Notes: generated by a model not told the origin, from the letters alone. A stretch of DNA of 64,000 bases from Dimorphilus gyrociliatus (GCA_904063045.1 CAJFCJ010000021.1:372001-436000); one strand, 5' to 3'; counted from the first letter of the stretch, positions 22,888-30,614 are shown. Made by a program: numbers and translations.

Positions 22888-23700
22888 TTATTTTGTGAAA
22901 AATGATATTGGAAAAGGTTCTTTATGCCAATTGTTTGACATTGCAATATTGTTGTATTCGCAGTTTGGACTGTAAATCTTATGTTCTTCGAATGGATCAT
23001 CATCTTCATCGAAGCCCTTGAGGCCAATAGCGCATTGGAAACATCTCAGTGCTGTATCAAAATTGGCAAATGCAAAGCCTGACAGAGCTGCCCTTCTTGC
23101 ATTCATTTTCCCATTTTTAAACGGCCAGTGATCATTAAAGCTGTTGTATCTATGCATTAGAGAGCTAAAACTTTCAAATCTGACACTTTGAGTCAATGTT
23201 ACTGAATCTGGATGAATATCCTTTTTCTCTTCGGGCTGATGATCGATGAAACACCCAGACATTTCTGTACGTTGTATATCAATAGCTTCATCTTGGAAGT
23301 TTTTACCATACGATGATAAATCTTGTTTATATTCTGTAAAACCACTTGCATTAGTTGACGCTTGTTTAATTTCATCTTTATAAAGGCTATCCACATTATC
23401 TGTTTCACCAAATGAATCTGTACTTTCCTCATCACTCGATACTTTCTCTTCCGGAGGTGGTATGAAATATGAACATGTTGAATGATGATAAGGCAAAATT
23501 CTGTTTAAATTGTTAAGTTCTATATCACACACACGATGTACTATTTGACAAAGACAACATATCAATTTAAAACTGTCAAAAAAATATCCATTTTCAACCA
23601 GCCGATATTTCATTAGACCTTCCACTGGAGAATTTTTGAAACTGATGAGCCTAATGATCTTCTTTGAGAAATCTCGACTACGTTCGGGTTTCATGTACAC
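22888..23700 (-). CDS. Intronless BIR-domain (inhibitor of apoptosis-like) protein: two BIRs, no RING
   Basis: The C-terminal BIR reads RYNSF..HWP......AALSGF......LRCFQC..GL...DEDDDPFEEH..YSPNCEY with CCHC ligands intact. The N-terminal BIR is degenerate (RLISF..SP...LVENGYF...ICCLC...HHSTC). An acidic linker separates them. Confidence 0.82.
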   Translation of the reverse strand: MYMKPERSRDFSKKIIRLISFKNSPVEGLMKYRLVENGYFFDSFKLICCLCQIVHRVCDIELNNLNRILPYHHSTCSYFIPPPEEKVSSDEESTDSFGETDNVDSLYKDEIKQASTNASGFTEYKQDLSSYGKNFQDEAIDIQRTEMSGCFIDHQPEEKKDIHPDSVTLTQSVRFESFSSLMHRYNSFNDHWPFKNGKMNARRAALSGFAFANFDTALRCFQCAIGLKGFDEDDDPFEEHKIYSPNCEYNNIAMSNNWHKEPFPISFFTK

Positions 23701-24497
23701 TTTGACTGTCTATCTGGCTTTTCAGAATATCACTTTTATATTAAGGTTATAGGAGTTTTATAACCACACTAATATAACCATGGTTATCAGAACAATCTTA
23801 TGAACATAACCTCGCGTTATCCAGAAAATTTTTATTATAGATATATGGTTATATTGATTAAAAAAGATCCGTTTTAAATTTAGGTTAACCAGCAAATATT
23901 AACAAAAAAGTAACATGAACCTCTTAAACATCCTGGTTAAGTCTAGGATTGATATTGGCGAATAGTTTCTTTTCTTCTATATTGTATTTATTATTAAAAG
24001 ATATATTGTCAATTTAATTCGAACAACATTAAATTTTTCATATTTCTCTGATTAATCGTTGCAAAGTTGAGAATGATTCAGTTTCCTTTTTGTATCTATT
24101 GTAATAAGTATTCTATGAGAGTTGTGATGAATTGATAAAATTCATTCATATTTCTGATCTTATGAATAAGGAAAATTTGAGAATTTTATCCTTGTACACT
24201 TTGCTTTCAAATTAATATATTAAATAGTAGAATTGTTGAATAATTAATTATTATGGCGCGTAGTTAATTCACAAATTGGAATAAAAAATGACTGTATTTT
24301 CAGTTAAATATTGAAACTGGAAAAGTTGTATAGATACTATAATACTGTATAAGTTACTTTGTTCAATTTTGATGAAATATAGAGACTCTTTTTGTTTGAA
24401 TTAAGCCAATTTATTCTTTTATTTTTCTTCCAAAATAAGCTACAAATAACTTTACGAATAAAAAAAGAAAAAGACACTTTTTAAGGGAATTTCAATA

Positions 24498-25066
24498 TCA
24501 TTGAAAATTATCAACTTCCTTCTTTTCGTAGACAATTGGTCGTTTTTCAAAATGAAGACCTTTCTTTTCGAAAACAACTGGTTTTTTTTCAAAATGTAAC
24601 AGCCTTTTTCCAAATTTCATTAATCGTTTTTCAGCTTCTATACCTGACTCTTCTCCGCCAACTTTAGTGGTTGGTTGATTTATCTGCTCCCATACTTTTG
24701 ATTTTAATCCGGTATACCAAAATACGCATCGGCAACATTCGACACAAGAAGATGCGCATTTAGTTTCGCAAGGATTCTTATAGAGTAGTTGGCAGCTACA
24801 TCCATCTGCTAGACGTAATCCACCAACAAATAAAAGAGCACCTAAATAAATAGATAAATGAAGAGATCTATAGCAAACAATGTTATAAAACTTTTCTATT
24901 TCAAGTTTCTTCAAAAGAACCTTGAAAGAAACAAAAATATGTTGATATACAATATATACAGTATATATATATTTAAATAATTGTATACTTAGAAAGAAAG
25001 AAAGATATAATAGGTTCAGTAAAAAGTTTTACTTAAGGAGAAAAATAAGATGCGAAGGCGGCTCAT
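24498..25066 (-). CDS. Secreted neuropeptide-like precursor (125 aa): Cys-rich module plus RFamide-like repeats; possibly a divergent CCRFamide-type precursor
   Basis: Exon 25066-25033 joins exon 24841-24498 in phase 1. Product: MSRLRILFFSLSALLFVGGLRLADG / CSCQLLYKNPCETKCASSCVECCRC...EAE-KR-LMKFG-KR-LLHFE-KK-PVVFE-KK-GLHFE-KR-PIVYE-KK-EVDNFQ*. It has a signal peptide, dibasic sites, a Gly amide donor and an upstream TATA box. Confidence 0.85.
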
Positions 25067-25105
25067 ACTCTCAAATTAATGACTATTCAGTGTAGTTGAT
25101 CCGGC

Positions 25106-25113
25106 TTTATATA
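25106..25113 (-). promoter_or_regulatory. TATA box of the neuropeptide-like gene
   Basis: TATATAAA on the minus strand, 40 nt upstream of ATG 25066, with an Inr-like TCATT near 25078-25082. Confidence 0.7.
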
Positions 25114-26180
25114 GCACTTAAGTTGATTGCGCCATATTGAAATTTTTATATGTAAAATACTGCACTTCATTTATTATTGATCAAATGGGAATAATCTACT
25201 GTTGCTTCTGTTAACTTACTAATATAGTTTCTTCTTTTAATAAGATTTCAACTGATAATGGATAAGCTCAAAGGAGTTTATAATTAGAATATTTTTTCTA
25301 AATTCTCATTAGCATATACAAATCTTCTTATTCTTTTTCGTTTTATTATTGAATTTTATCGTTTAATCGAATTATAAATTAATTTAACGAAAATTCAAAT
25401 AAATTTCTTCTTTAATGTTCTGTTTTTAAAGAATTATCTACATTTCTCTTTACAAATTTATCTATTCCTCCCTCTCTTTCATGTATATATATATATATAT
25501 ATAAAACTTTTAGTGTTATTTCTTTAAAGCTATACTGTTAAAAGTTAATCATTTTGTTTTTTCAACAATCGCCATTTTATTCTTCATTAATATTAGTATA
25601 CGTTAAAGGTTTGACATTAATTGGAGAGAATTAGGGGCATAAGATAATCTTAACAGTTTTGTTTTTCATATTGGTATTGTAGTAAAGTAACAAAAGATAC
25701 TAATAATGGCTTGATATAAATTACAATTTGTCGGGTTTAATATCACCTTACTACTTAAAGGAATTAACCTTTTAAGAGAATAAAACTAAACTATACTCAA
25801 GAGATTTTAATCTAGTCCTCTTTGATAAACCAAATCTATAAAAATTTGTTTGTTGTTTAATCAGGAAAATATGATAAGGCATCAAAACAAAATTATTATG
25901 TTGTGTGTTTTACTGAATAAATGTAGATAGGGAGGAGGAATGGGTTGGCACCAAATAAAAGAGAGGAATAGATAGATAGATAGTTTAATAAAGAAGGAGA
26001 TGGAGAGAAAAAGAAAATAGTTGTTTACAAAAGTAATCTTGTATCTGAGTGTTTTTTGTTTTTTTATCTTTCCAAAGTTTTTTAGAATACAATGACATTT
26101 TTGTTACTTTTACAAAAAAAAAAGAAAAAAATATATCCTAATTATTTTTAAACGGAATGTTTCTTTTTTTAATGAAATCT

Positions 26181-30614
<4,434 letters not shown>

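Follow-up and report, generated by a model that had tools for sequence, protein, structure and literature searches.

A two-exon gene of Dimorphilus gyrociliatus encodes a putative secreted precursor in which one amidation-type unit is followed by four conserved glutamate-ended heptads

Gene model and neighbouring genes

The window analysed here is a stretch of 64,000 nt from the genome of the tiny marine worm Dimorphilus gyrociliatus (GCA_904063045.1, CAJFCJ010000021.1:372001-436000) that is AT-rich (26–36 % G+C) and in which the genes are closely packed. The short peptide cassette that is the subject of this work forms the 3′ end of a predicted two-exon gene on the minus strand, the structure of which is supported by comparison with an ortholog described below, and the coordinates of the features of the gene are collected in Table 1. 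The encoded product would be a putative secreted and lineage-restricted precursor of approximately 125 aa that consists of a signal peptide (recognized by eye), a module containing eight Cys residues, a variable linker and a cassette of heptads, each made up of a pentapeptide and a dibasic pair. On inspection, the N-terminus has a basic start (MSRLR), a hydrophobic core of 15 residues and small residues at positions −3 and −1, and this signal-peptide-like layout is retained in the ortholog.

Table 1. Features of the peptide gene, in order of transcription. Positions are counted from the first nucleotide of the window.
Feature	Position	Strand	Basis or remark
Conserved promoter block	25067..25230	(-)	79 % identical to ortholog locus L002 over 164 ungapped nt
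TATA box TATATAAAG	25113-25105	(-)	47 nt upstream of the ATG, inside the promoter block
Exon 1: ATG (25066-25064), 11 codons + 1 nt (MSRLRILFFSL + A)	25033..25066	(-)	Donor GTAAAA at 25032
Intron 1, 191 nt, phase 1, GT...AG	24842..25032	(-)	Acceptor tttag at 24843-24842
Exon 2	24841-24498	(-)	Read to the TGA stop
Exon 2 start: remainder of the putative signal peptide (S-ALLFVGGLRLADG)	24801..24841	(-)	Predicted cleavage after A-D-G
8-Cys module, C-x-C-x7-C-x3-C-x3-C-x2-CC-x-C, then VFWY	24726..24800	(-)	Omega 0.04 versus the ortholog
Fast-evolving linker, TGLKSKVWEQ...GIEAE	24630..24713	(-)	Omega 0.52 over 28 codons
KR-LMKFG-KR, the sole Gly-extended unit; predicted product LMKF-amide	24603..24629	(-)	Translation; identical in the ortholog
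Four Glu-ended heptads, LLHFE-KK, PVVFE-KK, GLHFE-KR, PIVYE-KK	24519..24602	(-)	Translation
C-terminal hexapeptide EVDNFQ + TGA (24500-24498)	24498..24518	(-)	Translation
Two overlapping candidate AATAAA poly(A) signals	24410..24423	(-)	75–90 nt past the stop; inferred from sequence

Directly downstream of the peptide gene there is a single-exon ORF of 270 aa (22888-23700 (-)) with a BIR (inhibitor of apoptosis) domain (PF00653, E 1.8e-16). Just upstream, and on the same strand, lies a multi-exon gene (approximately 26180-30600 (-)), the first large exon of which (30267-30596) resembles by eye an SMAP-type ArfGAP zinc finger, and the later exons are Gln/Pro-rich.

The heptad cassette

An earlier sequence-only reading of the window had described four Glu-terminated peptides after LMKFG, each with a Glu codon one A>G change from GGA and together forming a duplicated 14 aa unit, and this description was found to be accurate. 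Translation of positions 24629-24501 (-) gives KR-LMKFG-KR-LLHFE-KK-PVVFE-KK-GLHFE-KR-PIVYE-KK-EVDNFQ-stop, exactly as claimed. The Gly codon is GGA (24611-24609), and GAA is found in all four of the Glu-ended units (24590-24588, 24569-24567, 24548-24546 and 24527-24525), with the middle A of each codon at positions 24589, 24568, 24547 and 24526 of the window, corresponding to positions 396589, 396568, 396547 and 396526 of contig C21. The duplication is present in the DNA as a direct repeat with a 42 nt period, 24520-24554 and 24562-24596 being 86 % identical. The cassette includes six K[KR] pairs at heptad spacing, half of which (3/6) are KK, and at two of the dibasic sites a Pro residue would lie immediately after the cut. 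Convertases generally cleave KK less well than KR.

The genome was also scanned for two heptad-spaced [F/Y]-E-K-[K/R] motifs, using the reversed pattern as the control. The pattern has six matches in the 77.9 Mb genome and the reversed pattern has seven in the whole genome, and single pairs are thus at the level expected by chance, while a run of four is found at this locus alone. Three of the six matches are from the peptide gene locus, with its four consecutive units, and the remaining three (on contigs C14, C15 and C46) are in the wrong frame or do not lie in an ORF and were set aside as chance matches.

An ortholog and its conserved promoter

A single ortholog was identified by a word search, namely P0001, a protein of 118 aa encoded at locus L002 in genomic DNA from Logan run SRR23372229. 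It shares 62 % identity with the product of the peptide gene by BLASTP and 69 % in the exon 2 alignment. L002 and the peptide gene have in common the TATA box, the ATG, the length of exon 1, the donor site, and the position and phase of the intron, and from the shared promoter and gene structure we infer that P0001 comes from a related dinophilid. The possibility that L002 is simply a contaminant copy of the same genome was considered, and is excluded by a nucleotide identity of 67 % in the coding exon. The corresponding values are 79 % for the promoter block and 45 % for the intron, where the location and phase have been kept and the sequence has not. In exon 1, four of the seven codons that differ are synonymous and the other three fall in the hydrophobic core. 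The Cys module of P0001 is conserved, with one loop two residues longer.

After EKR-LMKFG-KR, P0001 continues with LLHFE-KR, PLKFE-KR, PLKFE-KR, PLKFE-KK, GLHFE-KR and PIVYE-KK and ends with EQETY, which shares with EVDNFQ its first residue alone.

The 164 nt immediately upstream of the ATG (25067-25230 (-); L002:266-433) are better conserved than the coding exon, although synonymous sites between the two genes are saturated. The conserved stretches in this block include TTAAGTGCTATATAAAGCC, GAATAGTCATTAATTT and AGATTATTCCCA. Such stretches are likely to be cis-regulatory elements for one particular cell type, and some of them look like homeodomain binding sites.

Searches for further relatives

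Sequence searches were based on exon 2, the 11 codons of exon 1 being too few for a query. When the D. gyrociliatus genome (77,897,245 bases in 349 contigs) was searched, only the peptide gene itself was matched, and no family for it was found in Pfam, NCBIfam, PDB sequences or the ESM Atlas, a sub-threshold Pfam match to ELH (E 0.26) being regarded as noise. Among 1.84 billion protein cluster representatives, P0001 was the sole relative retrieved with a profile. The 43 other profile matches involve the cassette only, and the 16 of these 43 that were inspected consist of low-complexity sequence repeated in tandem, in proteins that are unrelated or spurious, examples of the rejected runs being RPVHFSQ, RPLAFEE and KIKFGKR. 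A word search restricted to the Cys module produced no candidates, and an AlphaFold2 model built on the two-sequence alignment, with a mean pLDDT of 37, was too poor for fold comparison. One of the profile matches, P0019 (169 aa), is made up of about ten tandem [KQ]IKFG-KR units, which have the same heptad design as LMKFG-KR, and it could be either a genuine xIKF-amide precursor of some other animal or a spurious ORF within repeated sequence.

In the published set of D. gyrociliatus neuropeptide precursors (PMC7854359, supplement 4) the gene does not appear, though the screen that produced this set included a script for cleavage patterns on precursors (PMC7854359). In the literature, LMKFamide was mentioned in no paper found, nor was any paper found that links RNA editing to the creation of amidation sites.

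Selection on the cassette

Selection was estimated from Nei-Gojobori counts on exon 2 in one pairwise comparison, that with P0001, for which dS is saturated. Over the whole of exon 2, the synonymous sites are essentially saturated (pS 0.68) and the overall omega is 0.13, with values of 0.04 for the Cys module, the most conserved part of the protein, and 0.52 for the linker. Across the 37 aligned codons of the cassette, pN is 0.068 versus a pS of 0.87, which corresponds to changes at approximately 6 of 90 replacement sites versus 18 of 20 silent sites (Fisher p = 6e-13), and the pN of the linker is 0.414. Hence, in this comparison the Glu residues are under purifying selection in a cassette that is flanked by a freely changing linker, and the alternative that the tail is decaying, which had been allowed for in the sequence-only reading, is contradicted both by the near-frozen replacement sites and by the units kept in the ortholog.

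The individual units follow the same pattern. LLHFE, GLHFE and PIVYE show no difference between the two species, and when the ortholog was checked for Gly or Glu at the amide-donor position, as had been proposed, Glu was found in all six of the equivalent units (four GAG and two GAA codons) and Gly once, at LMKFG. This single Gly is kept through a synonymous change, GGA here and GGT in the ortholog, as are the other residues of KR-LMKFG-KR, where the codon pairs that differ are CGA/AGA, TTA/TTG, GGA/GGT and AGG/AGA. The dibasic pairs are never lost between the species, and the second position swaps between K and R. Two sites, those after PVVFE (the third PLKFE in P0001) and after PIVYE, are KK in both species, and the others are KR or vary between KK and KR. 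On this comparison, purifying selection maintains the genomic Glu in the amide-donor position as well as the lone Gly and the dibasic pairs, and frozen peptides and cleavage sites beside a free spacer are the usual pattern of a peptide precursor.

The number of Glu-ended units is four here versus six in the ortholog, and units have therefore been duplicated or lost since the species split. The duplicated elements are the 42 nt unit here and three 21 nt PLKFE-KR units in the ortholog, pointing to tandem duplication or loss as the way in which the number of units changes. As all of these units in both species have Glu, the difference between Gly and Glu is older than the split. It had been suggested that a unit changed from Gly to Glu was amplified to give acidic non-amidated peptides. 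The presence of Glu in all of the units, the change in copy number and the purifying selection agree with this suggestion in all but its direction, a comparison of two species without an outgroup being compatible with Gly>Glu and with Glu>Gly.

Proposed processing and function

The explanation that we favour, and consider on balance to be probable, is that the heptads are the C-terminal peptide cassette of a lineage-restricted prohormone, in which the Glu-ended peptides likely have a function of their own. According to established prohormone biochemistry, prohormone convertases would cut after KR and KK and a carboxypeptidase would trim the basic residues. Peptidylglycine alpha-amidating monooxygenase would then convert LMKF-Gly to LMKF-amide, and the Glu-ended units, which would not be substrates for the amidating enzyme, would be left as free acids. 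The cell would thus release one amidated peptide together with LLHFE, PVVFE, GLHFE and PIVYE, each with a free C-terminal Glu, and if the sites that are KK in both species were to go uncut, longer Glu-ended products such as PxxFEKKGLHFE would be formed. The genome encodes copper monooxygenase (PHM/DBH-type) domains, and 7B2 and many amidated precursors have been published for D. gyrociliatus (PMC7854359). Peptides flanked by KK (WI) and a Pro residue right after KR (FVRIamide and FLamide) are also found among the predicted precursors of this species (PMC7854359).

The Glu-ended units match LMKFG in their degree of conservation whereas the spacer has drifted, and for this reason these units most likely have their own function; they could serve as co-released ligands or as modulators of an LMKF-amide or FMRFamide-type pathway. 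However, the conservation of the units is evidence of constraint and not of ligand activity. An amidated-type unit would have become non-amidated, as is thought to have happened when the annelid WI peptides arose from MIP. A more specific proposal, which we offer tentatively and think rather unlikely, is that xxx[F/Y]E peptides represent a new bioactive class in annelids, created via a Gly to Glu change in an FMRFamide-style unit and co-released, with either their own receptor or a role as antagonist or modulator at an LMKF-amide/FMRFamide-type receptor or a peptide-gated channel.

Release and activity of the Glu-ended peptides, if they occur, would make this a case of an amidated family giving rise to an acidic non-amidated one. 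Both states would then lie side by side on one small precursor, and the origin of peptide-receptor pairs from tandem copies would become testable in a tractable worm for which genome, CAGE, ATAC and RNA-seq data are available. Should the peptides prove inert, the gene would remain a clean case of selection on 'spacer' sequence that needs an explanation. In addition, the gene adds one lineage-restricted precursor to the published neuropeptide list.

Alternative explanations

The Glu-ended units could be cleaved and yet inert, acting as acidic spacers that offset the charge at the dibasic pairs or aid sorting or processing, with the bioactivity residing in LMKF-amide, in the 8-Cys module or in both. 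Acidic-ended spacers are common between amidated copies, SSSFWD, PSEFWE and SQFWD between the AKFML-Gly copies of the D. gyrociliatus FLamide precursor being an instance, and it is the Cys module that is the best conserved part of this protein. However, the true spacer of the precursor, the linker, is free to change and the Glu-ended units are nearly frozen, including at hydrophobic and aromatic positions that an inert spacer would not need. Moreover, the unit that was multiplied in the ortholog is Glu-ended and not amidated. We therefore regard inert spacers as unlikely.

It may also be that the tail is not processed at all and is a conserved, charge-alternating extension of a secreted Cys-rich protein of gland, matrix or antimicrobial type, the likeness to a peptide cassette being coincidental. 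Processing is itself a prediction from the sequence, KK occupies half of the dibasic sites, homology to known neuropeptide families was found neither in Pfam nor among the 1.84 billion representatives, and the published neuropeptide list does not include the gene. Against this, the exact EKR-xxxFG-KR amidation signature has been kept through synonymous changes, and the K/R swap at the second basic position is that expected of cleavage sites. The heptad layout is also shared with FMRFamide-type precursors of D. gyrociliatus (e.g. KR-LIKFG-KR-FMRFG-KR), and the number of units differs between the species, as is usual for peptide cassettes. An unprocessed tail is thus quite improbable.

The sequence-only reading had further raised the possibility that A-to-I editing of the middle A of the GAA codons, which would then be read as GGA, switches amidation on after transcription. 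Each Glu codon is indeed one A>G change from a Gly codon, and the GAG codons of the ortholog would likewise become GGG. There are also two loci, C5:3350664-3354027 (+) and C21:906589-907977 (-), where an A_deamin domain has a dsRNA-binding motif just upstream, and from these an ADAR enzyme is probably encoded in the genome. The second of these loci is approximately 470 kb from the window on the same contig, and A_deamin was matched at two more loci, on C8 and C19, neither of which has a dsrm match next to it. In addition, the Phe-Glu-Lys codons UUUUCGAAAA are self-complementary and would allow a local AU-rich hairpin of approximately 13 bp. UUUUCGAAAA is a perfect palindrome, and neighbouring units (24540-24595 (-)) can pair into the hairpin. 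The pairing is a consequence of the codons used, and the ortholog, with its GAG codons, does not share it.

However, this local hairpin is all that was found at the cassette when the pre-mRNA was folded in search of an ADAR-type duplex. Inverted repeats that touch the cassette are no longer than 18 nt and are 72–80 % complementary, and the fold of the 3′ portion of the mRNA is no more stable than those of shuffled sequences (z +0.19), that of the ortholog being less stable than those of its shuffles (z +1.37). The whole pre-mRNA has a z of −2.3 (20 shuffles), and the stable helices are in the intron and the region of the Cys module, not in the cassette. Favourable neighbours for ADAR are a 5′ U or A and a 3′ G, and in each of the four codons the target A stands in the context G-A-A. 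A G on the 5′ side clashes with the base-flipping loop of ADAR and is a disfavoured context (PMC11334849). Furthermore, synonymous sites are saturated across the cassette (pS 0.87), conservation is likewise lacking in the intron and the 3′ flank, and a genomic G at this codon position is seen only in the LMKFG unit in either species. Conserved editing sites usually show constraint at the surrounding synonymous sites. With no duplex, a 5′ G and unconstrained synonymous sites, the editing switch finds no support and is very improbable.

Finally, that the tail is decaying or that this is not a real gene is hardly credible, since, though the gene is known here from genomic DNA and no annotation or database record of the protein from this species was retrieved, conservation extends over the promoter, start, splice sites, intron phase, Cys module and cassette at saturated synonymous divergence and the overall omega is low.

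Comparison with known systems

The preferred reading, a prohormone cassette with constrained Glu-ended peptides, can be set against several known systems. The precursor resembles those of FMRFamide type in having a putative signal peptide, a Cys-containing N-terminal region and tandem heptads composed of 4–5 residues with an aromatic end, an amide-donor position and a dibasic pair. FMRFamide-like 2 of D. gyrociliatus includes KR-LIKFG-KR-FMRFG-KR (PMC7854359, supplement 4), and the LIKF-amide predicted from it is one residue from the predicted LMKF-amide. However, no unit here ends in Arg-Phe-Gly, the only Gly-extended unit ending in K-F-G, four of the five units have Glu in place of the donor Gly and there are eight Cys residues rather than two. 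Sequence homology to FMRFamide-type precursors was not detectable in searches of the D. gyrociliatus genome or of the 1.84 billion representatives.

Like achatin (GFGD/GFGE), the Glu-ended units would be very short, non-amidated, KR-flanked peptides with an acidic residue at the C-terminus, and the D. gyrociliatus achatin precursor includes KR-GFGE-KR, with GFGE rather than GFGD (PMC7854359, supplement 4). In Platynereis, achatin G{dF}GD activates a GPCR (PMC5747525). However, the cassette includes no GF[GA][DE] units, the peptide and the precursor are unrelated to those of achatin, and achatin activity requires a D-amino acid at position 2. Hence, assignment to either the RFamide or the achatin family failed, and what the precursor does have is dibasic-flanked repeats with a Gly signal.

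The annelid WI peptides are non-amidated and are considered to have diverged from the amidated MIP/Wamide family (PMC3890597). The evolutionary idea is similar, namely replacement of the amide-donor Gly followed by multiplication of the new unit, and the WI units of D. gyrociliatus are also KK-flanked. They differ in that the replacement is Ile, Leu or Val and is found in a separate gene, whereas here it is Glu and amidated and non-amidated units occur in one cassette.

A Cys-rich domain and short dibasic-flanked peptides on one secreted precursor are also found in the prokineticin-domain and FLamide precursors. In the Platynereis prokineticin-domain precursor, the LFV-amide peptides immediately follow the signal peptide and precede the Cys-rich domain (PMC3890597), whereas the peptides here follow the Cys module. 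The FLamide precursor of D. gyrociliatus has eight N-terminal Cys residues, and in it AKFML-Gly alternates with SSSFWD, PSEFWE and SQFWD (PMC7854359, supplement 4), so that acidic-ended units stand beside amidated ones as they do here. However, the Cys spacing is different, and Pfam and HMM searches give no match to either family. Acidic-ended units may be commoner in D. gyrociliatus precursors than the names of the peptides suggest.

ADAR recoding sites are alike in the Glu to Gly codon change and in the presence of ADAR-like genes, and the cassette departs from them in having no duplex, an unfavourable 5′ G and flanks that are not conserved.

Annelid precedents exist for each single element of the cassette. 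What sets it apart is the combination of one amidated and four to six Glu-substituted units in one conserved heptad cassette on an unrelated, putatively lineage-restricted precursor.
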